Positions 3,673 to 58,900 of a stretch of DNA of 64,000 nucleotides are shown one piece after another. The translations under genes were made by a program, and so were the position numbers. The DNA is from Hemiscyllium ocellatum (taxonomy: Eukaryota), in contig NC_083442.1 of the NCBI RefSeq assembly GCF_020745735.1, forward strand, positions 33,886,072 through 33,950,071. The letters are read 5' to 3'. A model generated the notes under the pieces. That model searched no databases. It had not been told where the DNA came from and saw only the letters and a program-made list of their open reading frames with translations. Numbering within the stretch: the stretch's first letter is position 1; every line of letters starts with the position of its first letter.

Positions 3673-4639
3673 GATTTTTTTTTCTCTTAATTTTCTTTTG
3701 TTCTATGTTTATATCTGTCAGCCAGTGCTCCCTGATTGGACCAGGTTTATACCTTTAATCAGAATACTCGTATTCTATGAGGTCCGGCTGGTTGACCTCA
3801 TCACTACAGAAGGTGCCAAATTCAACCTGGTCTGTTTGGAGTTACTGATCTCAGGTGAGCTAACTAGAAGGTTTCTTTCTATTCTTTCACATTTATTGTC
3901 CATCCTCTCGCTGCCCTTGAGAAGGTGTTGGTGAGCTGCCTTCTTGAACTGGTGCAATCCCCTTACCAAACCCACAATTCCTTTACAGAGGAGTTTCAGG
4001 AATTCAACTCAGTGACACTGAAGGAACAGTGATATATTCTTGTCGATGGTACACACTGCTGCTACTGAATGTTGGTGGTGGAGACTTGTGGATGTGGTGC
4101 AAACTTTGCCCTGTATGGTGTCAATGTTATTGTTATCCAGGCAGATGAGGAGTATTCCATCACACTCCTGACTTGAACTGAAGAGGCTTTAAGATTCCAA
4201 TCACCCCTGACCTGGTAACCCAAGAGGAAATCCTCTCTCAGTTCTGCCATGGCAACCGTTTCCTGATCTCTTACACATTTACACTTTGCTTGCTGTCATA
4301 TAGCGCACGAACAAGTTCGCAAATGGAGAACTATTTATCTCTTCAGGGATAGACCAGCAGGAAACATGCAAAGCAAAGATTCAATCCCATTGAGTATCAG
4401 TGGAGATTCTGAGTATGGTTTGTTATCAGATATTTTAACTTTGAGGTAGTGGGCATTAACCTTTGAACTGGAGAATCCATTGAAAAGCAGGCATGTCCCA
4501 GAGCCGGAACTTTCCCAGGTTAAATGATTTTAAGTAAAATCATCACTGTTCTGAAGGAATTTGAAGGAGGACTTGTGCTGGAAATGGTAAAAAGTTCACG
4601 TTGGGTCAGTTGGAGGGATCTTCTAAGGAAGCAGAGCGT

Positions 4640-4918
4640 TTGCATAAGCTTTCTGTGTATCTATTCCAGTCCTGGGAATAATTGACAGGGATAGTGTGGA
4701 GAGAGCTTTACGCTGTATGTAATCCCATGCTTTCCTTGTCTTGGGAATGTTTGACAGGAGACAATGTAGAGAAAGGTTTACCCTCGTTCTAACCCATTGC
4801 TGTCCCTGTCATGTGAATGTTTGATGGGTATACCATCGAGAGAGCTAAACTTTCAGTTTAAATTGAAAGAGTTTGCTGTACTCCGTATCTAGCTCTATGC
4901 TGTCCCTGTTTTGGGTGT
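4640..4918 (+). repeat. Degenerate ~65-70-bp tandem repeat, 3-4 units
   Basis: Recurrent TGTATCTAA..CC.TGCTGTCCCTGTC.TGGGAATGTTTGA..GG.ACA.TGTAGAG..AGCTTTAC. Confidence 0.75.
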
Positions 4919-7572
4919 CTCCCTTCCTCACGTTAATTATAAAATCTGTTAATTCTGGGTGATGTTAATGCTGAGTTCGCCTCTTTCTCTCAATGATGCT
5001 GGGTTCTCATTCACTTTTCTTGTTAATTCTGGGATCTGCCTCCCTGTGTCTCTCGGGATAAACCAAATGTGATGCGGAAGTTGGTTTCCCGCCATCAGAC
5101 AGCCTCACCCAGCTCCCAGTCCCTGAGGATCTGAATTGGAATTGGGAGAGACACAGAACTGCGGCAGCCTCAGCAGAAGTTGCAGAGACTGTGGGAGTGG
5201 TGGGGGCTGTAAGGTTAGGCATCCCCACTGCCCTGACCGATACATCAGTAAAGTTAGACAGTGATAAAGTCCCATGAAGGAAGGGGGGTGAGGATATTTC
5301 AGCCAGAGTCTGGGACTGATGCAATCCTTTCAGACTGGGTTCACTGACCCATCTGCAACAAGCATTTGCAGCGCTCAGCTTGATTCCTGAGAGAACCCGA
5401 ACCGGCTGGTTAAACACTTGTACACCGCGTTAAAAGAACAACACCTCAGCCATGCTGTTAGCCAGTCAAAATGCACAGCAAGATCCCACAAAGCGGGACT
5501 GGAAACCAAGGGGCAAAAACTGACATGTCAACTTCCAATTCCGGACAGGAACCATTAAAAGCAAGAGTCATCTTCCTCCTCTAGTGCCTGTAAATTCAGC
5601 ATCCCCTACCAAAACTGAGCTGAACTTCACAGAATCAGGTTCGGTTTGGGATGTCTCTCCGCTCAATCACACACCTGCCTTGCAACTTCCTCCAAGTAGT
5701 CATCCATTCGCCAGATCGTTCTGAACACGCTGATACTCGACTGATCTCCACCCCCACCCACACGTCCCAAACTTCATTGTAATGGGCTCGAGTTGCCTCC
5801 TCCAGGTGTAGCTTATTTTGCAGTTTACTTACAGCCATAGTGGGGTCTGACTGCCCCCAGCCCATCCACGTCGTCTGATGTGGACATTCTCAACTCACTC
5901 TGCCCCTCCAAACCCCGACGAAAGGACACCGCCAAGTCTCCGTTTTCCAGCAGGGTGGGCGGTGGACTTCGTTATACGTGTATCTCAGTCTCTTTCAGCG
6001 TTTCCTTCCTCTCCTCCCTCTCTCTTTCTCTCAGTCACTTGTGGGTGTAGCTTCATGCTCAGCATTCATCTTACACTCCCTCTATTGCTCTCCCTTTGTA
6101 CTGCACTGCTTATGCTTTCACTTTCTCCAGTGACTCCACATCCTTCGTATCCCCTTGCCGTTCTGGCTTGAAAATTGTCCAGACACTTAAATGTAAGAAC
6201 GAGAGGCAATCTCAGTGAGGTGTGTAAGATTCTGAATGGGGTAGACGCTGGGAGATTGTTCCGCCGGCCATGGAATATAGAACACAGGAGACCATCCCTT
6301 AGGAAAACAGGACTGACTGTTTAAGACTGAGATGAGAAGAGGTTACTTCATTCAAAGGGTTGTGAATCTTTAGAATTCTCGACCCCAGCGGATTGTTGAT
6401 GCTCCGTTGTTGAATACAGATAAGGATGGAGGCGACAGACTTTTGGTCTCCCAGGTAAGCAAGGGATCAGAGAAGTAGGCAGGGAGGTGGAGTTCAAGGC
6501 TAATGTTAAACATAATTCCAGTGAATGGCAGAACAGGTTGGACTGGCTATACAGTCTACTCATTGTCCTATTTCTTGTGACCTTACCAAATTTTGTTATC
6601 TCTCCCCACCTCCCCCCCCCCCCCCCCCCCAATCCCCTTGCTTGTAGGAATTTGAGGCTGTTCAGCCCCTCAAGCCTGTTTCATCATTCAGAATGATCTG
6701 GCAGTTCTTTATCTTAATTCCACTTTAATTTACACTCTGGCTAGCAAAGTTCTATGCAACTCCAAATAAAATATAATACTGGGGGATGGGGAACTGCACT
6801 GCACTGTTGGAAGGACAAATTTGTGAATGATTAGCCAAATTGAGATCCTGACTGTGTTTCAGGGGAATATAAAGCATCTGATTGAATTTTTTCAAAGATG
6901 ATTCTCCTTAGTGTCATAACCAATATTTATCCCTCAAAAGAAATCACTTAGGTGGGTAACTTTGTCACTGCTGGAGATTTCAGTGTGTCACTTGGCGGTT
7001 GATTCTCCCATTACAACAGGGACTACACTTAATGCACTTTCTAAATGCACGTTTTTTTTCTTTTATCCCTGAAACTGAGGAATATACTTTTACAATCCAT
7101 TATTTTGAAATAAGAACAGGACTTTGAGGATTTTAACAGAGACACTTTGTTGCGCCTTCTTGATACTGTGATCTGATGAGCACTGCCACGGCAGAAGGCC
7201 AATTATTAATAAAAAAAAACTGGTTTACTTAGATTATTTGCTAATTATTTTGTCCATTTCCTAACATGTTGTGTAAGATAATAAATTGGTCTATATGGTG
7301 ACAAAGTCTGTGTCTTGTGCCAGACTCATAACCTCCTGTGGATGTTCCAGAAAGAGAAAGAGAGGAAAATACTGGGAAGTAGGGAGAGGAAACCAAATGG
7401 TTATCTGTTGCCACTTGTCCTGCTCCTAATTCCTTTCCCTTTACTGCTGCCCCTTCTCATTCTGCCTCTGTGACTTCATTGTCACTCTTCTGCTGGCACA
7501 ATTTGTCTCACTTATTTAGGCTCACTCCACTTTGAAGGGTGTTTCTTTGAGGTGAGTCATGGGTGCTCTCAG

Positions 7573-7774
7573 TGTAAAAAATGAGGTCTGCAGATGCTGG
7601 AGATCACAGCTGAAAATGTGTTGCTGGTCAAAGCACAGCAGGCCAGGCAGCATCTCAGGAATAGAGAATTCGACGTTTCGAGCATAAGCTGAAGGGCTTA
7701 TGCTCGAAACGTCGAATTCTCTATTCCTGAGATGCTGCCTGGCCTGCTGTGCTTTGACCAGCAACACATTTTCA
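7573..7774. mobile_element. ~200-bp fold-back element made only of Neptune-type PLE termini, 16-bp TSD
   Basis: Perfect 79-bp inverted arms 7611-7689 / 7696-7774; TSD TCATGGGTGCTCTCAG at 7557-7572 and 7772-7787. Confidence 0.9.
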
Positions 7775-8848: not shown

Positions 8849-11800
8849 GAAACTACTGGATTGTTGTTAAAATCCTAGCTGAGTTACTAATTTCTTTTAA
8901 TTAAGCAAACACTGTCCATACCCAGTTTGCTGTCACATATGACTCCAGACCCATTGCAATGTGGTTAGCCATCTGATATTGCTCAATAAGCCACTCAGTT
9001 GTATTAAAACTGCTCCAAGAAACTACAATGTACATAGACTGCAGCTCACCACTCAGGCATTTAGCAATGGGCAACAGCTGCTGGTCTTGCCTGAGCCAGC
9101 CATATCTTGTGATTGAATGGAAAATATTCATGCTCAAAGATCTGAAACTGATAGATCTTGGTGTTCTAACTTAGGATTTATTCACTGACAGGGCAGCCAC
9201 CCATCCAAATAGTCAGGATCACTAAATACAACAAAGGAGGACATAACTTAAAAAAATGTAAGTAGACGTGCAAAAGAATTGCCAAGGCACACACTACTTT
9301 GCTGATGAGATCAGGATGTCCATGATGCAAGTTAAATGCACCAGAAATATGTTATAAAGTTTCCTCCCTTTCTATCATGTTCTCCATTCACTCCCCTGAG
9401 ATATTTAGAACTGCTCAGTTGGTGACATTGTTCAGGAGGGAGAGCAGCTAAGGAGTTTGGCTCTGGTAAAATGGCAGCACACCCACCTTGAGGAATGGGT
9501 AAGTTATCTCTGGTGTCAATATTCTCTGAACCATATTTGTTCCTCAGTCAATATGACACAAACAGATTATCTAGTTGTTATCACAGATGTTTGGGAGATT
9601 TATGTGTGCAAACAGAGTGCTGTGTTTACTCAACCAAGACACTGTACTTATTCATCTGTAAAGTGCTTTGGGACAGCTAGTCAGTGTGAAGTGACATATA
9701 AATGATAGTCTCCCTTTACAATTAAAACAATTTGCATAGCACTGTATTGGGAATTATCATGAAATTTCTCTTCCTGTTACAGTGTAAAGTCTGTCCATGA
9801 AGCCCTGTGTGGAGATCACCTCATTCAGCATGGAGCAGAGGTTGAAACTCACATCCACAGGGCTTAGTAACACATTGGACAACTTATGGAACTATTTCTA
9901 CAGTATCAATTCAGTTAAACATTTTATTTAATCATAATAGTTTCTGTTAGTTTTATTCTTTTGTTTAATTGGGAAGGAAGACAAGAAACACAAAGAAATG
10001 ATAAATTAACACTAAGCTGTCAATTTTAAATTCTGCTAACTGCATGGTGAGGGTGAGATTAGGGAAGAGTATTCTCAAGAACCAGGGAAGGGTTCAATCA
10101 AAGGAAATAGTATGATGTATGTTTATTAGTGAGGAAGTACTAGGCAGTACAATTAGAGCTTGAAACAAGAAAATCCTCATTGTTAAAAGATCATATTTTC
10201 AGAATATTTTCTCTAATTAAAAAAGCAACTAAATTGCCCACAGTGTTCAAGGATGTGTAGACTAGGTGCATTAATCAGGGGTAAAGGGTCTGGGTGGGTT
10301 ACTCTTCAGAGGGTCAGTGTGACTTGTTGGGCTGAAGGGTCTGTTTCCATACTGTATGAATCCTAATTCTAAACTTGATCAGTAATCAACAATTACATTC
10401 CCATTTGTTTTAAGGTCGAGGAACAGTGAGAATGTTCAGACTCTGGCAATTTGCAAATCTCTGATTTTTAATTACTGCACCATTAGTGGCCATGCTTTCA
10501 GCCCCTTGACCTCTGGAATTCCTTCTGTATACTTGTCTCACCTTTCAAGGCAAAGTCTATAAGCCTTTTCTCATCTGCTTAATGTGGTTCCAAGTCACAT
10601 TTTGCTTGATAAACATCTTTGGTCATTTAATTAATTTTTTTATATAGCACAGTTTTAGTTGTCTTTGTAAGTTTACAAATCAATGTGTAGTGAATTATAT
10701 GGAGGACTGCTCCTCCACACGGTTCTATTGCGTAAATACATCACAATTGGGCACAGTGCCATTTCTAATCATGGTCGCCATCTACTGCTGAGAATCATCC
10801 CATGCAATCAAACTGTCTGCTGTCCCTTGGCTAATTTTAAACAAACTCATGAATAAAAAGTGCAACATAAAAACAGGCCTTCCGAGTCAACTAGTTGCTG
10901 TCAGCATTTGCACTCCACATGAGCAAAGAATACGTAATACCTTTTACTCAGGGTCGTGGTTTGAGGAAATACCTGTTCCATTCTCCCTCATCCATTTGGC
11001 ACATGTAATCAATATTTCTGCCTCAGCTACTGGAGTTCAGAAAAGTAAGAAGCTTTTTGATTGAAACATAAGATCCTGAAGGGTCTTGACAGGGCAGTTA
11101 TACAAGGGATACCCACGAAACACAGAGATGAAGAGACATTTTCTCTCAGATGGTGGTAAATCTGTGGAGCTTAATTCCTTGAAAGGCAGTGGAAGCAGAG
11201 TCTTTAAATATTTTTGAAGTGGAAGTAGATAGATTTATGATAAGGAAGGGGGGGGAGGTGAAAGATTATTGGAATATATTGGAATGTACAATAATCAGAA
11301 AGTCATGGTCTCATTGAAGGACAGAACATACCAGAGACTGGATTGCCTGCTCCTAATTTGTAAGTTTATATGTACAACCACAGACAGGAACTGAATTTCT
11401 CAGCTTTGTAATGCTCTGCGTGAAGCAGTTTCTCCTCTTTATATGTGAATGGGATATAGGCATCGCTGCCAAAGTCAGCATTTATTGCCCATTCTTAATT
11501 ATCCTGAAGGTGTTGTGAGTTATCTCCTTGAACTGCTGCAGTCTTTATGGGCTAGGGCCACTCTCAGTGTTGTCAGGTACCGTTTAGCAGTTTTCGCAGT
11601 TACAGTGAAATAACAGTGGTTAGTCTAAGTCAAGATGGTAAGTGGCTTGGAGGTCAATTTACAGGTGGTGGCATTTGGATGCATCTTCTTCCTTTGCTTT
11701 TAAGTGATAGGGGTCGCAGAGTTGGAAGGTGCTGTTGGAAAAGCCTTAGTAAATTGCTGTACTGCATCTTGATGGCACAATTGCTGCTACTGTGTACCAG

Positions 11801-15682: not shown

Positions 15683-16318
15683 TCATTTCTTTGAAAGCTG
15701 CTCGATCAGTTTTTTCCAGCTAATTCTCTTCTGGGTGATATAGACTGGGGTGACAACCACGACCGGTGGCCTGTGGTCCTTCCTGAGGTATTGCTCACAA
15801 AGAGCTTCTGTAGTGCACATCACATACATCCCGCAATCATAGCTGTTCTTTTGTACTGGTGATGAATCCTCAATGAAAGGCACTTCAGATTTGGTTCCCA
15901 GGAAGTGTTGCAGCTTCTTCGCTATCTTTCGGGCATGGCTTTCATTCATGTTGCTGCAGGAATCATAGTGGCTAAAGCAGTTCCTATCTCTGTTGTAACA
16001 TAGCAAGCTCCAATGAGACCCACCAGCCGCCTGCACAGAGTTGTCATTGACTGCAAGGAAGACCAAGCTTTTCTGTGCCAGTGTTAGTGGCTCCAGGAAG
16101 ATTGCCAACTCCTCCTGGCTGGCCATGCATTTAATAAGCTGAGTAACTTCAGGGCTGATGAAGCAGGCTCTGTCTGAGAGTTCCTTGTACTGTTCAGCGG
16201 CAAAGTATTCAAAGGCAAATGCAATGATGTGGTCATTGAGCCAGTTGGGTGGGTTGAGGAGTGAGAGATCTGAGCGTCGGATTAAGCTGTCATGGTAGCT
16301 CAGTATTACTGGGTCCAT
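15683..16318 (-). CDS. SENP8: Sentrin-specific protease 8 (NEDD8-specific protease NEDP1/DEN1), 211 aa, entire CDS in one exon
   Basis: Translation MDPVILSYHDSLIRRSDLSLLNPPNWLNDHIIAFAFEYF...NDNSVQAAGGSHWSLL...HYDS...QKNSYDCGMYV...WKKLIEQLSKK* is colinear with human SENP8. The C48 protease triad H102/D119/C162 is intact. True ATG at 16318; splice acceptor (minus: tttcttgtttgtttgcag|GAGCAGCATG) at 16326-16327, so the first 7 residues of the ORF-track call are not coding. Confidence 0.97.
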   Translation of the reverse strand: MDPVILSYHDSLIRRSDLSLLNPPNWLNDHIIAFAFEYFAAEQYKELSDRACFISPEVTQLIKCMASQEELAIFLEPLTLAQKSLVFLAVNDNSVQAAGGSHWSLLCYNRDRNCFSHYDSCSNMNESHARKIAKKLQHFLGTKSEVPFIEDSSPVQKNSYDCGMYVMCTTEALCEQYLRKDHRPPVVVVTPVYITQKRISWKKLIEQLSKK

Positions 16319-19845: not shown

Positions 19846-21710
19846 CAGAGCTGAAAATGTGTTGCTGGTTAAAGCACAGCAGGTCAGGCAGCATCCAAGG
19901 AACAGGAAATTCGACGTTTCGGGCCAGAGCCCTTCATCAGGAATGAGGAGAGTGTGCCAGGCAGGCTAAGATAAAAGGTAGGGAGGAGGGACTTGGGGGA
20001 GGGGCGATGGAGATGTGATAGGTGGAAGGAGGTCAAGGTGAGGGTGATAGGCTGGAGTGGGGTGGGGGCGGAGAGGTCAGGAAGAGGATTGCAGGTTAGG
20101 AGGGCGGCGCTGAGTTCAAGGGAATCGACTGAGACAAGGTGGGGGGAGGGGAAATGAGGAAACTGGAGACATCTGAGTTTATCCCTTGTGGTTGGAGGGT
20201 TCCCAGGCAGGAGATGAGGCGCTCTTCCTCCAACTGTCATGTTGTTATGTTCTGGCGATGGAGGAGTCCAAGGACCTGCATGTCTTCGGTGGAATGGGAG
20301 GGAGAGTTAAAGTGTTGAGCCACGGGGTGGTTGGGTTGGTTGGTCCGGGCGTCCCAGAGGTGTTCCCTGAAGCGTTCTGCAAGTAGGCGGCCCGTCTCCC
20401 CAATATAGAGGAGGCCACATCGGGTGCAGCGGATGCAATAGATGATGTGTGTGGAGGTGCAGGTGAATTTGTGGCGGATATGGAAGGATCCCTTGGGGCC
20501 TTGGAGAGAAGTAAGGGAGGAGATGTGGGCGCAAGTTTTGCATTTCCTGCGGTTGCAGGGGAAGGTGCCGGGAGTGGAGGTGGGGTTGGTGGGGGGTGTG
20601 GACCTGACGAGGGAGTCACGAAGGGAGTGGTCTTTGCGGAACGCTGATACGGAGGTTGGTGGGGTGGTAGGTGAGAACCAGTGGGGTTCTGTCTTGGTGG
20701 CGGTTGGAGGGGCGGGGCTCAAGGATGGAGGAGCGGAAGTGGAGGAGATGCGGTGGAGGGCATCGTCGATCACGTCTGGGGGGAATCCGCAGTCCTTGAA
20801 GAAGGAGGCCATCTGGGCTGTACGGTATTGGAACTGGTCCTCCTGGGAGCAGATGCGGCAGAGGCGAAGGAATTGGGAATATGAGATGGAGTTTTTACAG
20901 GGGGCAGGGTGGGAGGAGGTGTAGTCCAGGTAGCTGTGGGAGTCAGTCGGTTTATAGTAGATGTCTGTGTTGAGTCGGTCGCCCGAGATAGAAATGGAAA
21001 GGTCTAGGAAGGGGAGGGAGGAGTCTGAGACAGTCGAGGTGAATTTGAGGTCGGGATGGAAGGTGTTGGTAAAGTTGATGAACTGTTCAACCTCCTCGTG
21101 GGAGCACGAGGCAGCGCCGATACAGTCATCGATGTAGCGGAGGAAAAGGTGGGGGGTGGTGCCAGTGTAGTTGCGGAAGATGGACTGTTCCACATATCCT
21201 ACGAAGAGACAGGCATAGCTGGGGCCCATGCGGGTGCCCATGGCAACTCCTTTAGTTTGGAGAAAGTGGGAGGATTGGAAAGAGAAGTTATTCAGGGTGA
21301 GGACCGGTTCAGTCAGTCGAAGGAGGGTGTCAGTGGAAGGGTACTGGTTGGTGCGGCGGGAAAGGAAGAAGCGGAGGGCTTTGAGTCCTTCGTGATGGGG
21401 AATGGAGGTGTACAGGGACTGGATGTCCATCGTGAAGATAAAGCGTTGGGGACCGGGGAAGCGAAAATCAAGGAGGAGGTGGAGGGCGTGGGTGGTGTCC
21501 TGAACGTAGGTGGGGAGTTCTTGGACTAAAGGGGACAGAACTGTGTCGAGGTACGCGGATATGAGTTCGGTGGGGCAGGAGCAGGCTGAGACAATGGGTC
21601 GGCCGGGGCAGTCAGGTTTGTGAATTTTGGGCAGGAGGTAGAAACGGGCGGTGCGGGGTTGTGGGACTATGAGGTTGGAGGCGGTGGATGGGAGATCCCC
21701 TGAGGTGATG
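19846..21710 (-). mobile_element. Penelope-like retroelement (Neptune-type), 5'-truncated: RT + Cys linker + GIY-YIG endonuclease + 3' terminus with hammerhead
   Basis: 492-aa ORF with FYLLPKIHK, GRPIVS, MDIQSLYT, GVAMG, RYIDD, CNRRKCKTC, IIYCIRC..LYIGETG..RFREH. An apparent internal frameshift/deletion lies near 20650-20740. Confidence 0.93.
19907..19944 (-). ncRNA. Minimal type I hammerhead ribozyme motif in the PLE terminus
   Basis: Minus strand reads AUUC-CUGAUGA-A-GGGC-UCUG-GCCC-GAAAC-GUC-GAAU: intact core boxes, 4-bp stem II, 4-bp stem I, GUC cleavage triplet. Confidence 0.85.
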
Positions 21711-22225
21711 TCCATTTACCACTGTTTTCAGGCAACACGTGACATTGGACATGAACTGGATGTCCATTGCTACCCTGTTCACTACAACCTCTCAAAGGCA
21801 ACCAGGGTTGGGCAATAAATGCTGTCCAGCCAGTGATGCTCACATCCAGAAGTGAATGAAGTAAAAACCTACAATTGATAGACTGCAGCGTGCGAAGAAG
21901 ACAGTTCATGCAGGTGGAATTAGAGAAAAATTGCATCTCTCACCAGCAATGCTTACATCTCATCAATAAATAAAATAAACTCCTTTCTGAAAGTCTGTGC
22001 AATCTGCTCTCAAACCACTCAATGGAGTGCAATCCCTGCTTTATCAATACTGATCTTTCCAGCGAAATTGACAGCCAATTAGGCACTGTTCTGAGGGTGG
22101 GATTAACAGTGCAAAATGAGCTTGGTTATTCCCCTTAATACCACTGACAGTTTAATGACAGTTAGGTTGTCCAGACTCGAATGGTGATAAATAACTTTCT
22201 AACAGGAGCAACATTTCGTCCCACC

Positions 22226-23303
22226 GCAGTGACTGGCAGAAGCAAGAGTCTGACCCCCTGCAGTGCCTGACAGGGTCCAGAGAACCACACTCCCTGCAGT
22301 GACTGACAGGACCAAGAGCCCCATCCCTTGCAGTGGCTGACAGGGTCCAGGGCTCCATCTCCTGCAGTGACTGACAAGTGACCCATCCCCTTGGATGCTG
22401 CATAACCTGCTGTGCTTTAACCAGCAACACATTTTCAGCTCTGATCTCCAGCATCTCCGGACCTCACTTTTTACTCATCCCCTTCAATGACCAATTGCCG
22501 CAGAGCCTTACTCTACGCAGTGGGTGCAGCCACACAGCGCCTTGCTTTGAAAGGCCGACAGGACACAGACTTTCACTCTGTGCACAGATTGACAGGACCT
22601 AGAGACAATGATGGACAGCCCCGGGCCCACCACTGGCAGAGGCTGACACTATGGGCCCGCCTCCTAGAGTGATTGACAGCCACATAACCCGCCCCAAACC
22701 ATGATGGACAGCGTTGAGCCCACCCCTTGGTGATTGACAGACTCCGCCCTGCGCAACGATGGACAGTCGTGAAGCCACACCCCCCCGTCGTGATTGACAG
22801 TCCCAGGGAGTCCGCCTCCAGCAGAGAATCAAAGCACTATGACCCCCACCCCCACGGTAACTGAACGCCATCTGCGGGGATTGACAGTCCCAGGTCCCGC
22901 CTTCTGTAGTGATTGACAGGCCCATGTCCCGCCTCCTGCAGTGATTGACAGTCCCAAGTCCCACCTTCTGTAGTGATTCAGAGCCTCACGCTCCGCCCGT
23001 TGCCGTGATTCGCACCAACCTGCTATGGCCAGTGCAGTGATTGACAGCTCCATGTCCCGCCTCCTGCAGTGGTAGACAGCCCCAGGTCCCGCCTCCTGCA
23101 GCGGTAGACAGCCCGTTGCCATGATTTACAACCCCATGGTCAGCCTACTGCAGTGATTAACGGCCTCGTACTCCAACCTTGCCTCGATTGACAGCACTAT
23201 CCCCCGCCCTTTGTCGTGATTGACAGCTCCTTTCCCGCCCACTAGTGACTGACAGGTCCATGTCCCGCCTCCTGCAGTGATTGACAGCTTTCGGGGCTGA
23301 CAG
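22226..23303 (+). repeat. Degenerate 32-36-bp minisatellite, ~30 units, consensus about GCAGTGATTGACAGTCCCAGGTCCCGCCTCCT
   Basis: Cores at 22230, 22264, 22300, 22334, 22368 (34-36-bp period), and an exact 32-bp period at 22878, 22910, 22942, 22974, 23006, 23038, 23070, 23102. Interrupted by a PLE-terminus fragment at about 22391-22474. Confidence 0.92.
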
Positions 23304-23433
23304 CAGACATGATCCACGAGCCGGGTCCCTCAGCCAACTGCCGCCGGGACGCCAGCCTGCACTAACTTTCCTGTCAACCTCATAGCCCCAATTTACAAAA
23401 TGAGACACTTCAATCGACGCCTGTCGATTTTAC

Positions 23434-23600
23434 CTGAGCGCTGCTGCTGCCTCCTATCACACCCCCGCCTCAGGGTCAGGCCCAGGCCTTGGTCTGCTAA
23501 GATCTATATCGCCTCCGCTTCATGTCGGCGCGAAGCGACTGGCGGGCAGCTGCCGTAAGGCGTTAGCTCGTCTTCACGACGGTGCCGTGCCGGCAGGTGG
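23434..23600 (-). other. SENP8: Probable non-coding first exon of SENP8 (5' boundary approximate)
   Basis: Minus-strand donor CGCTCAG|GTAAAA at 23434/23433 at the edge of the CpG island. It pairs plausibly with the acceptor at 16326, giving a ~7.1-kb intron. Not transcript-verified. Confidence 0.6.
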
Positions 23601-23714
23601 CAGTGAAGCCCCAGCCCGGCGCGCGCGCGTTCCTGCTCCGCCCCGCCCCTCCCTTCCCCGAGTGTGTGCGCTGCTCCTCCCACCCCCACCGCCGCTGTAG
23701 GCGCATGCGCCGGG

Positions 23715-23845
23715 TGTGGAGCAGTCGGATGGGGTGGGGGGGAACGGCAGGGGAGACGGGCTCGTGTCAAACGGGAGATCGCAGGGCGGCGCGAGCGAGA
23801 GGAGACGGGCTCGGTAACGGTCGCCACCGCCTCCCGGGGAATGAG
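23715..23845 (+). other. Probable non-coding first exon of the divergent plus-strand gene (MYO9A by synteny, inferred)
   Basis: Donor GAG|GTGAGG at 23845/23846 just downstream of the NRF1 site. SENP8 is head-to-head with MYO9A in human. No MYO9A coding sequence is recognisable in the window. Confidence 0.45.
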
Positions 23846-24219
23846 GTGAGGCTGAGGGTCCCGGGAGGGTGATGTCGAATCCGGCTGGGGCGGATGGAGA
23901 CAGCTATTAAACAGGACTGTGGTCCGGACGGTATCGGTGCTGGCTGTTGATGGAGCGCGCTGTGAGGCGGGGAGCGGGGGGGGGGGTAATCGGTGATAGC
24001 TCCCGGTAAGCCGCGATCGGGATGGAGTCCCAAACCGCCCTCTCTCCTTCTTCGCGCCCGCCCGTCCGCAATCTCTGCAGCTGTTAACGTCCCTGGCTCG
24101 CGCCCGCGCTCCCGGACAGAGCGCCGGGGACCCGCTTGCGCGCGAGCGTCCTGTCACCATTCCCCGCACCCCCCCCCCCCTCCTCCAGCCACACCCCATC
24201 CGCGGCACCCCGCACCGAG

Positions 24220-24482
24220 ACATCCCTGTGCCCGAGGGGGTGTCCCCTGTGTCTGAGGAGCTGCCTCCTGTACCCTGGCGTGCTCCCTGTGTCTGAATAG
24301 GTGTCCCTGTACCCTGGGGTGTCCCAATACCCTGGGTGTCCCTGTGCCTGAAAGGGTACCCCTGTACCCTAGGCATCCCTGTGACCCAAAGGGCATCGCT
24401 ATATGCTGGGGTCTCATGTTGGAGGGTTGCCTGTGCCTGGAGGGGCAACCAGTGTCTGGAAGGCTGTCCATGTGCCTGAGAA
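24220..24482 (+). repeat. Degenerate ~18-20-bp minisatellite (GGGTGTCCCTGTGCCTGA-like)
   Basis: About 12-13 recurrences of tccctgtg/cctgtacc motifs; gives the GT-rich low-complexity ORF on the minus strand. Confidence 0.8.
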
Positions 24483-41584: not shown

Positions 41585-41912
41585 GTTCTGGATTAGTGGT
41601 GCTGGAAGAGCACAGCAGTTCAGGCAGCATCCGAGGAGCAGTAAAATTGACGTTTCGGGCAAAAGCCCTTCATCCGGAATAAAGGCAGAGAGCCTGAGGC
41701 GTGGAGAGATGAGCTGGAGGAGGGTGGGGTGGGGAGAAAGTAGCATAGAGTACAATATGTGAGTGGGGGGAGGGGGTTAAGGTGATAGGTCGGGAGAGGG
41801 TGGAGTGGATAGGTGGAAAAGAAGGATATGCAGGTAGGACAAGTCATGGGGACAGTGCTGAGCTGGAAGTTTGTAATTAGGGTGAAGTGGGGGAAGGGGA
41901 AATGAGGAAATT
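41585..41912 (-). mobile_element. Neptune-type PLE 3' terminal fragment with mutated hammerhead (CGGAUGA)
   Basis: Similar to 19860-20165; minus strand AUUC-CGGAUGA-A-GGGC-UUUU-GCCC-GAAACGUC. Confidence 0.85.
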
Positions 41913-55994: not shown

Positions 55995-58900
55995 TTAATC
56001 ACTTGTGTTTTTATTTTATAACCTAGCAATCTTTGCTATGCCATACAATACTCTAACATTATTAAGGTCTGTGTTATGTGTCAAGAGTGTCTTCACTAAT
56101 CTCAGAATTTGTATTTGGGCCATTTGCTGATCTTTCTATTTCAAGATTACATGTTGCTCAATTTCTGCTTTCAATTTTGAATGAATTTTGTTCGCCAGAT
56201 TTTAGATATGATTGATAGGTGGGAAAGTTAGAGCATCCATTTTGAGGAAAGAAAATCTGGCATAGTCCTGCTCATAGTGTTGAATTTGTCCTTTGGTGAC
56301 ATGGTTTACAGTTCAAACTCTGCAGTATTCTGGTAGAAAGAGAGTGATGTGTTTTACTGAGCAGCCAGCAAGGGGAGGGGAATATTGCATCAAAAACGCC
56401 CTTGTTCATGAAAACCGTATACTGCTTTGAAACTACTGTACGATCAATTGATCTATCTCACTCGTGAAGAAGACCTTTGTGACTTATATGAACTAAGATC
56501 TTTCTTACTGATACATGTATCAACCACGTGCAGCTTTCTTTGCTGAATTTATCTTTATATGTGCAACATGAATAAGAAAGAGTGAAATTTTGTCCAGCTT
56601 TGTTACAGTGCGTGCATCATAAGTTGGACCTAGCTATAAAAGGGTTTATTGCTCTCTGTTGATAACAGTGAAGAGCCTGACCGGTATGTCCTCTCTTGGG
56701 TAGATTTTTTGACTGTTGATTTTGCTAATGTGCCTGACTAATCCTGTTGTCTTTGCTTGATTGCACTTCAATATGTAATTATATCCAGTGTTATTTATCT
56801 AAACTTTGCTGACTGCACTCTAGAAATAGAGCTGAGACCAAGGAGGAAATGATGATTGATGTGAGTTGCTTGACCATAACAGTAGGATTTGTGAAACATG
56901 ACAAATAGTATGTGGGTAAAGTATTGGACAGTATACTCATGCCACATGCTAAAGAGCATCTTTCACCAAGGTCTAATGCTGATCCCTCTCTGGCCTGCAT
57001 GTAGTTTAGTGGTTTTTCTTTCAAAGAAGAGTAAGGACATGAAAGTTTAATGAGCATAATTTAAACTAGAAGATTTATAATGGACAGTGCCTGAATTGTG
57101 ACCCATGTTGATTGGCACAAGATTTGCCTATTCATTGATGACTGGACATAGAATGACAACTCTATATAGTCCATATATCCCACTTATTCTCTCTTATTTG
57201 AATTGATTGAAAGTGGTTTTGGGCATAACCTATGCACTGAAAGAAAGCAAAGATAGAGGTTCCAGCAGCCTTGGGCGAATATATGCACCCTTTACAGACA
57301 GATATAGTGATTTGTTTCCTGAAATGTCATGGACCTGAAAGATGAAGTCTGTTTCTATCTCCATAGCTCCTACCTCACCTAAGTATTTCTGTTTTTTTTT
57401 CTTTTGTTATTTCAGATATCCAGCATTTGCTTTCGTGTTAGTGCTCTGTAACAGAATAGTTTATCTTCTATCATTTAAAATACTTTTGAGTTGATTATAA
57501 GCATGTGTAATTTCACAAATGTGTAATGTCCACTATAAATATGTCTAATTTCACAACCCTAAATGAGTGTGATTTGGAGGCTGGCATTGTAACTTTTATC
57601 AGTTGATGCCATGTTGCTCAGTAGAATTACTGGTGTGAAACACAGATTGATAGAATTCTTCCTATGGGTGAAGTATATAATTGAAATTTGTTAGATTTTC
57701 AAGAAGTTGACAAATCTGCCAAATGATTCTTTACAATTTTTGAGGTTTTTAAAATTTGTTCAATAGGATGTGGCTGTATGTAGGCCAGACTTTGAATAGA
57801 TTTACATCCCTAAAGCTCATGAGTGAACCAGATGTATTTTTTGACAATTAGCAAGGGTTGCAATTAGGCTAGGCTTTAATTCCAGGTTTCACTGAATTTA
57901 AATTTCTTCATCTATCATGGTAGGATCCAAACCCATGTCCCTACAACATTAGCCTGGTTTCTGGATTCCAGCAACACATTTTTCGGCTCTGATCTCCAGC
58001 ATCTGCAGTCCTTACTTTCTCCTTCTGGATGATTAGTCCAGTGACATTACCACTCTGCACTGCCTCCCCAATTTAAGACCATACTCTGATTTTGAATGCG
58101 TAATGTGGGCTGTCATTCCAGTACTACACTATCAGATGTGCTACGTTGCAAATAAAAATGTTCAAAACTCCATCTACCCTTTTAAACTAATGCTGGTCAA
58201 AGAAGAAGGGAGTTCACCAGGCCAATAACTATCCCTTAGCCAACATTATTTTTAACATAAAATTTATCTGGTCATTTGGTTGTTAAAAGGATGTAAGACA
58301 GAGGCAGAGAAGCTTTAAGTTGATAGCTAGAATGAGCCAGTTGTTTTGAGGAAAGTTCAGATAGAATAGGCTTTTTATTTTACAAATTTAGAAGAGTGAA
58401 AAGATAATTTGATGAAAAATATTTTTTTGATATGTATGCACTGCAGCAAAAATCATTAAAATGAGCAAGTTTCAATGTATAATACAATTTAAAATGTAAG
58501 TTTTAATTCATCATTACATTAGATATGTCATAACATGCCTGAGTAGGTTGATTTAAAAACTATTGAAACTTGGGTTTTGTCGAGAGAGGCATTCTTGTTT
58601 TCATTTGGTGTTTTCACATTTCAATGTAGTAAAGAAAGAAGATTCAAACAGCCTTTCCCACAATATTGTTTTGTCTGCAAATAGTGTTAAGTAACTAAAG
58701 TTACAGTAATTTTTGTAGGCTGCCATGATGGTATTTTGTATTGGCAAAGTGTGTGCCAAATGATACCCGACAGATGCATATCAGCAATGTGACTATGAAA
58801 TAAATGTTTGGTTCAAAAATGACTTTCCTGAGATCTTTACTTTTACTTAATTTGTAGCATTACAATTTACTGTGAAAATTATCTCTGACATGTTTAACAT

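Follow-up and report, generated by a model that had tools for sequence, protein, structure and literature searches.

The 64-kb stretch of DNA from the epaulette shark Hemiscyllium ocellatum (assembly GCA_020745735.1) that was analysed here, referred to below as the window, carries the gene SENP8 on its minus strand and, next to the inferred promoter of this gene, a tandem array of short units (positions 22226-23303) whose recurring core is the decamer TGATTGACAG. This decamer is the DECA site of PBX-PREP heterodimers, a motif that is found at the summits of Prep peaks in both zebrafish and mouse (PMC6023610) and whose mouse form, tGAxtGaCag, was described together with a strong preference of PREP1-PBX for promoters (PMC4395233); the identification of the core as a PBX-PREP site in an initial annotation of this DNA agrees with both studies. 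The same annotation named the gene as SENP8, and this assignment is secure, as the 211-aa open reading frame (ORF) at 15683-16318 codes for a protein that has a Peptidase_C48 domain and is 98% identical to SENP8 of Chiloscyllium punctatum.

Gene context and structure of the array

Exon 1 of SENP8, probably non-coding, was located by the motif CATGAAGCGG, which is conserved as CATGA[AG]GCGG in each of the four elasmobranchs compared (epaulette shark, whale shark, little skate, and smalltooth sawfish) and is followed by the donor CAG/GTAAAA in both sharks. In the little skate, exon 1 (positions 6264-6364 of the locus) contains this motif and is spliced to the main exon at 9990 in seven RNA contigs that have the template-switch oligo at the 5' end, so that the decamer sites of the skate are intronic. 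From these full-length cDNAs and the conserved motif and donor, we infer that the epaulette shark array lies in SENP8 intron 1, as initially proposed, and starts ~130 bp past the donor. It stands at the edge of a CpG island, close to the promoter, spans approximately +230 to +1300 from the SENP8 start site, and reads antisense to SENP8. The island itself reaches ~600 bp beyond the inferred start site. The array had also been placed directly upstream of a divergent gene, a claim that found no backing: for 10 kb in that direction the annotation lists no coding sequence, and no long plus-strand ORF downstream of the island resembles a first coding exon.

Exact copies of the decamer occur eight times in the window, at 22670, 22731, 22791, 22910, 22942, 23038, 23217, and 23278, precisely the coordinates given in the initial annotation. 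All eight are on the plus strand, compared with 0.26 copies expected from shuffled sequences, none of which reached eight. The one-mismatch variants named along with them, TGACTGACAG (22300 and 23246), TGATGGACAG (22609 and 22702), GGATTGACAG (22878), CGATTGACAG (23185), and TGATTTACAA (23122), were likewise all found at the array, and such variants are concentrated within its 1.1 kb. The degenerate form TGAnTGACAG has 10 fits in the array, all on one strand, and none on either strand of the rest of the window. By its structure, the array is a head-to-tail minisatellite, in which Tandem Repeats Finder (TRF) recognizes three sub-arrays, 22226-22376 (period 34/70), 22872-23114 (period 32, 7.6 copies), and 23216-23289 (period 29). 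Cutting at the cores yields 29-30 unit positions, 16-36 bp apart, in keeping with the ~30 units estimated originally, and 18 of these units have decamer-like cores. The eight successive cores that had been reported at 32-bp intervals are indeed spaced by exactly this distance from 22878 to 23102, but half of them are degenerate at key positions (TGATTCAGAG, TGATTCGCAC, TGGTAGACAG, and CGGTAGACAG).

Most of the decamers are paired with a GC or CACCC box of the Sp/KLF type. The hexamer CCCGCC occurs nine times on the plus strand of the array, compared with 17 times on both strands of the remaining 63 kb, and a GC or CACCC box begins 9-13 bp past GAnnGAC, most often 11 bp, in 13 of the 15 units that have a box within 26 nt. 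The old irregular units (22586..22877) follow a ~61-bp dimer pattern, in which TGATTGACAG alternates with TGATGGACAG, each of them followed by CC[GA]CC, with a spacer of 5-13 nt between GAnnGAC and the GC box. The observed/expected (o/e) ratio of CpG is 0.12 in 22201-22400, which covers the distal units, versus 0.54-0.63 in the proximal array.

The initial annotation also held the core to be more conserved than the rest of the unit, and the alignment of units supports this. When positions 22560-23303 were aligned to a 32-mer consensus by a register-free wraparound procedure that favours no position, the core matched at a fraction of 0.83 over its 10 positions, CCCGCC at 0.79, and the other positions at 0.63, and the most conserved of the 32 circular 10-nt windows coincided exactly with TGATTGACAG (p = 0.009 by permutation). 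Compared in pairs, the 16 older units have an identity of 0.67 in the core, versus 0.59 in the GC box and 0.35 elsewhere, the last value being close to random for the composition, whereas six near-consensus units are young and are conserved evenly along their length.

This profile bears on the possibility that the repeats act in RNA, with the sense-strand G-runs of the GC boxes serving as intronic splicing enhancers or the plus-strand units imitating a branch point and a 3' splice site. The short distance from the exon-1 donor would suit such a role, and the plus strand of the young units reads as a CTGAC/TTGAC word, then a pyrimidine tract, and then CTGCAG. However, CTGCAG is poorly kept in the old units (0.38-0.48) and the plus strand is antisense to SENP8, which led us to discard the resemblance to splicing signals; the G-runs, for their part, leave unexplained why the decamer is the best-conserved window. 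Scans of the window with Rfam families and for tRNAs were empty, and action at the RNA level is considered very improbable. A translated open frame across the array has no similar translated arrays among 5.8 billion proteins. A CTCF-like reading of CCGCCTCCTGCAGTG, made by eye against the consensus, was dropped on account of mismatches at three key positions.

A Penelope-like retroelement with an intact minus-strand ORF of 492 aa (20237-21715), encoding reverse transcriptase and GIY-YIG domains, is located between the array and the coding exon, 300 bp from the array, and an ~80-bp fragment of a Penelope terminus is found within the array itself (~22393-22475). Both would be in line with the array being part of a transposable element, or else a dispersed satellite that has no connection with the promoter. 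However, the Penelope-like element stops before the array, and orthologous sequence picks up again past it, at 21902 or below; in C. punctatum, the SENP8 gene spans 2.2 kb less and therefore probably lacks the element. The fragment within the array was inserted separately and is absent from the whale shark array, and the array is orthologous in place in the whale shark. The dispersed-satellite alternative, which the initial annotation had raised as grounds for rejecting its own proposal, was checked over the window and the 20-kb orthologous loci described below, and no other copy of the unit, nor in the window any other cluster of cores, was found. An origin of the array from a transposable element was thus rejected on account of its placement, its orthology in the whale shark, and the lack of other copies in the window, and we regard this whole class of explanations as highly unlikely. 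Short dispersed relatives of the Penelope terminus number at least five in the window (22393-22475, 7574-7654, 19846-19900, 41596-41636, and 57968-58018).

Table 1. Features of the epaulette shark window and decamer-like sites at the orthologous SENP8 loci (positions in other species refer to their own 20-kb loci)
Species	Feature	Position	Strand	Evidence or remarks
Epaulette shark	Main SENP8 coding exon, 211 aa	15683..16325	-	Acceptor TTTGCAG/GAGCAGCATG
Epaulette shark	Penelope-like retroelement in SENP8 intron, outside the array	19846..21900	-	Reverse transcriptase and GIY-YIG ORF; terminal repeat match
Epaulette shark	Small alternative upstream exon, coding end (MRCKHCW, then GT donor)	21944..21963	-	Isoform X1 of C. 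punctatum SENP8: its back-translated N-terminus matches once, with one mismatch
Epaulette shark	Distal sub-array, five 34-36-bp units, cores TGNCTGACAG, almost no CpG	22226..22385	+	TRF period 34/70; unit list
Epaulette shark	Insertion from Penelope terminus, CATCCCCTT on both flanks	22393..22475		90-96% identity to 7574-7654 and 19846-19900
Epaulette shark	Degenerate stretch, no clear units, CCAAT at 22491	22476..22585	+	Collinear with whale shark L009 5649-5551
Epaulette shark	Old irregular units, 23-34 bp	22586..22877	+	Unit list; matched unit by unit with whale shark
Epaulette shark	Regular 32-bp block, youngest units	22878..23121	+	TRF 7.6 copies; eight starts exactly 32 bp apart
Epaulette shark	Proximal irregular units, 29-32 bp, ending ~130 bp from inferred exon-1 donor	23122..23303	+	Unit list
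Epaulette shark	Promoter CpG island, GC 0.62-0.74, CpG o/e 0.91-1.09	23401..24200
Epaulette shark	Non-coding SENP8 exon 1 (inferred), donor CAG/GTAAAA at 23434/23433, start site approximate	23434..23570	-	Motif conserved in four elasmobranchs
Epaulette shark	18 decamer-like sites	23287 down to 22264		Exon-1 motif at 23524
Whale shark	12 decamer-like sites	5162-5752		Exon-1 motif at 4907
Little skate	8 decamer-like sites	6582-6926		Exon-1 motif at 6310
Sawfish	5 decamer-like sites	7122-7446		Exon-1 motif at 6887

The candidate upstream exon in Table 1 follows closely on the distal end of the array and is not included in the 211-aa SENP8 product recorded for this assembly. Across the CpG island, on its other shore, there is a second, unrelated minisatellite (24223-24481), with units of ~18-40 bp (CCCTGTGCC / CCCTGTACCC), which corresponds in place to an array at 4135-4233 of the whale shark locus. 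A GC-richer stretch at ~5000-6000 is located close to where an IQGAP-like gene begins. This gene, which encodes CH, RasGAP, and IQGAP_helical domains, comes after SENP8 on the minus strand in all sharks examined.

Counterparts of the array in other genomes

Orthologous loci of 20 kb were found via SENP8 proteins in five species, the little skate (L001), whale shark (L009), elephant shark, a chimaera (L010), smalltooth sawfish (L011), and spotted gar (L012). Decamer-like sites of all four elasmobranchs (Table 1) are antisense to SENP8, with the first one 226-263 bp past the exon-1 motif, and are rare in the remainder of each 20-kb locus. The full decamer is exact at eight sites in the epaulette shark, five in the whale shark, two in the skate, and one in the sawfish, and a GC box accompanies the decamer in every one of these species. 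Shark and batoid DNA at this locus is otherwise unalignable by BLAST. As far as can be judged from sequence, the fact that three other elasmobranchs carry clusters of this motif in the matching location and orientation argues for a function of the array.

The whale shark array is collinear with that of the epaulette shark and could be matched to it by unit over 22205-22877 and, less surely, over 23185-23330; the proximal units of the epaulette shark (23122..23303) correspond approximately to whale shark positions ~5262-5140, with the register uncertain by one unit. The distal epaulette shark units (22226..22385) have orthologs in the whale shark in which TGATTGACAG is still intact. Positions 22878-23184 have no counterpart in the whale shark, so that the regular 32-bp block appears to be lineage-specific, either an expansion in the lineage of the epaulette shark or a loss in that of the whale shark.

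The skate locus has two exact decamers and a cyclic AMP response element (CRE), followed by a young array of 37-bp units (6.4 copies at 96% identity), each of which combines TGAGTGACAG, a variant that fits tGAxtGaCag, with a CACGTG E-box and a perfect GC box. The two single decamers, along with the sequence on either side of them and the CRE, are conserved between the skate and the sawfish; a perfect CRE, TGACGTCA, stands beside the decamers in both (L001 6553-6830; L011 7290-7330) and is absent from the shark region. The batoid arrangement CCCCGCCTTCT-N9-TGAT[TG]GACAG is similar to CCCGCCTTCTGTAG-TGATTGACAG, the unit of the sharks. The common factor would be a module of a GC box and a decamer that was amplified separately at periods of 32, 34, and 37 bp. 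The origin by tandem duplication and the changing copy number that were suggested initially are both evident from the lack of the 32-bp block in the whale shark and from the skate's own 37-bp array. The accompanying proposal, that helical phasing aligns the sites on one face of the DNA, did not hold up, because the 32-bp phase is limited to the block that is absent in the whale shark, the older units are irregular, at distances of 23-36 bp, and the skate array repeats every 37 bp, or ~3.5 helical turns.

The elephant shark has a 28-bp minisatellite of 102 copies with 92% identity (L010 5430-8264), which borders the SENP8 CpG island on the flank that faces away from the gene; the repeat unit (CAGTCAGTAACAG...) was not counted as a DECA array because it is two mismatches away from the decamer, at key positions.

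Tandem decamers are also found in metagenomes. A scan for contigs with three exact copies of TGATTGACAG 29-37 bp apart, which gives a raw count based on the decamer word alone, returned at least 120 contigs (L013-L132) with tandem cores. They contain at least 92 distinct units with periods from 10 to ~150 bp, including 10-39-bp and higher-order units and, among the matches listed, come from mixed eukaryotic sources. The core is directly followed by GTG in 26 of 90 units among these matches, and the fact that all 26 are from four related JGI project groups suggests that they represent one minisatellite family with a shared 13-nt core, residing in some host genome. In 17 long arrays among the same matches, conservation was 0.943 in the core and 0.921 in the spacers, a difference that is not significant (p = 0.13). 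In a viral collection, the decamer word had no hits, compared with one and none for two control words, numbers too small to be informative.

Relation to known regulatory elements

The composite element GAnnGAC-11 bp-CCAAT is bound by PBX-PREP, NF-Y, and Sp2, and Sp2 is reported to touch the PBX-PREP dimer via its SP-box, which is common to other Sp proteins (bioRxiv 10.64898/2026.02.16.706105). The array shares with this composite the decamer and the promoter-proximal site, the Sp partner of the composite is matched by the GC box of the array, and the second box of the array, mostly 11 bp past GAnnGAC, takes the place of CCAAT. The two differ in that the box of the array is CC[GA]CC, in a module present ~30 times, whereas the composite has CCAAT and occurs once; furthermore, Sp2 works without its zinc fingers in the published complex, whereas a GC box is present in the array. 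The canonical DECA-11 bp-CCAAT element itself was considered and rejected, as the window has only two one-mismatch matches to GAnnGAC followed by CCAAT at 10-12 bp, compared with 4.4 expected by chance, and the array contains a single CCAAT. Because the CC[GA]CC box sits at the CCAAT offset, pairing of TALE and Sp proteins on the DNA of the array is plausible.

Promoter-proximal GC-rich minisatellites and variable-number tandem repeats (VNTRs) can modulate expression, the 30-bp promoter repeat of MAOA and the insulin VNTR being examples. Like these, the array consists of units of tens of base pairs beside a promoter, with a copy number that has shifted in evolution; unlike them, it has a defined heterodimer site as the conserved part of its unit. 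A literature search found no report that joins the DECA motif with tandem repeats.

Selection or neutral amplification

We favour, with a probability of roughly 0.6, the interpretation of the array as an old, functional homotypic cluster of TALE (PBX-PREP/MEIS) and Sp/KLF sites that was built and remodelled by tandem duplication. A serious, if less likely, alternative is that it is a neutral by-product, in which a single functional module of a GC box and a decamer was amplified by minisatellite instability or by duplication of a germline-bound site, and the extra copies are inert and slowly decaying. Short insertions at germline-bound sites often copy the motif and build homotypic clusters with no selection required (Kaiser et al. 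2021, PMC8559717), which fits the origin of the array, as a site with its flank has been duplicated repeatedly near a promoter in both cases. Those insertions, however, measure 5-20 bp and were seen as human polymorphism, whereas the units of the array measure 29-37 bp and form a far larger cluster, which has persisted across elasmobranchs with turnover. The low mutation rates of sharks (PMC10587355) also count in favour of neutral amplification.

A direct comparison is provided by 10 orthologous unit pairs from the epaulette and whale sharks, in which the expected slower change of the core holds for only one half of it. The GACAG half has 2 differences at 50 positions versus 65 at 304 in the spacers (p = 0.0017), although this division of the decamer was picked after seeing the data, the numbers are small, and aligning repeats may favour repeated words. 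The TGATT (PBX) half, with 14 differences at 50 positions, changes as fast as the spacers, and identity over the whole core (85%) is not significantly above that of the spacers (79%; p = 0.19); the flanking single-copy DNA is 82-85% identical. Positions 1, 3, 4, and 5 hold 14 of the 16 core differences, while G2, G6, A7, and C8 are invariant; the slow-changing positions agree with the published tGAxtGaCag (PMC4395233). Only 1 of the 10 orthologous cores is perfect in both sharks, most of the others having decayed in one lineage, and the common ancestor probably had more perfect sites, different ones of which were lost in each lineage.

The fast PBX half, the unremarkable conservation of the whole core, and the scarcity of shared perfect sites weigh against a functional cluster, as do several other observations. 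No decamer clusters were detected near the SENP8 islands of the chimaera and the gar, and neither Senp8 nor Myo9a is in the searched supplements of the mouse and zebrafish papers on Prep chromatin immunoprecipitation. Both the CpGs and the PBX half are gone from the distal units, which may mean that part of the array is dead. The minisatellite on the other shore of the island means that this neighbourhood makes repeats anyway, and the 28-bp array beside the chimaera island and the uniform conservation of the young units also fit neutral amplification. Other observations speak against it: in four lineages, multi-site clusters persist at a common offset and orientation although the DNA around them is unalignable, the GACAG half is far more conserved than the spacers, the old units keep their cores despite near-random spacers, and two batoid decamers are individually conserved, with flanks and CRE, between skate and sawfish. 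Given the half-site pattern, the pattern within the array, and the persistence of the clusters in unalignable DNA, selection on site content with turnover of single sites can be proposed with moderate confidence.

The half-site pattern could also mean that the word is read by another factor, such as monomeric MEIS, PREP, or TGIF on (T)GACAG, or by an unnamed protein. Only GACAG is clearly constrained between the sharks, with TGATT drifting, and the distal units retain CTGACAG but lose TGAT; nevertheless, the full decamer is exact at one or more sites in each of the four elasmobranchs, and the skate variant TGAGTGACAG still matches the heterodimer consensus, which makes this explanation improbable.

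If the array is indeed a functional TALE and Sp/KLF cluster, its history and mode of action might be as follows. A module of ~30 bp, consisting of a GC box and a decamer, would be older than the split between sharks and batoids, and local tandem duplication, decay of single sites, and insertion of a small retroelement would have reshaped the array in each lineage. PBX-PREP heterodimers and Sp-family factors would occupy many adjacent sites, and their occupancy might keep the promoter-proximal region open and unmethylated, supporting steady transcription of SENP8 and perhaps transcription in both directions. The array would act through how many good sites it has, and neither a particular site nor the helical phase would be decisive. 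In this scheme, the motifs, their tandem arrangement, their place relative to exon 1, the orthology and turnover between species, and the slower change of GACAG are observed in the sequences, while factor binding, effects on chromatin or methylation, and dependence on dosage are proposed.

A much broader idea, which we consider doubtful, is that germline-bound promoter sites of elasmobranchs (TALE decamers, NF-Y CCAAT boxes, and Sp GC boxes) regularly seed minisatellites that are then kept by selection on site number, resulting in copy-number-tunable promoters throughout the genome. Under this idea, decamer-N(~11)-GC box might represent a TALE-Sp composite of a new type, comparable to DECA-CCAAT, in which the SP-box would contact the PBX-PREP dimer.

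Sharks and batoids separated ~250-300 million years ago. If the favoured interpretation is correct, the SENP8 array would be a clean natural case of a regulatory site cluster that was kept for a very long time while the DNA carrying it was rebuilt by tandem duplication. Through this repeated rebuilding, the motif, its partner box, the orientation, and the offset from exon 1 persist, whereas the unit length, copy number, and spacers do not. What is needed would then be many TALE-type sites by GC boxes, and what is dispensable would be the helical phase and the exact copy number. The array offers a direct way to ask, in a shark that can be kept in the laboratory, whether homotypic site clusters reflect selection or mutational bias. 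It also suggests a decamer-GC-box pairing alongside the known decamer-CCAAT element, and possibly illustrates a general route of promoter evolution in sharks.

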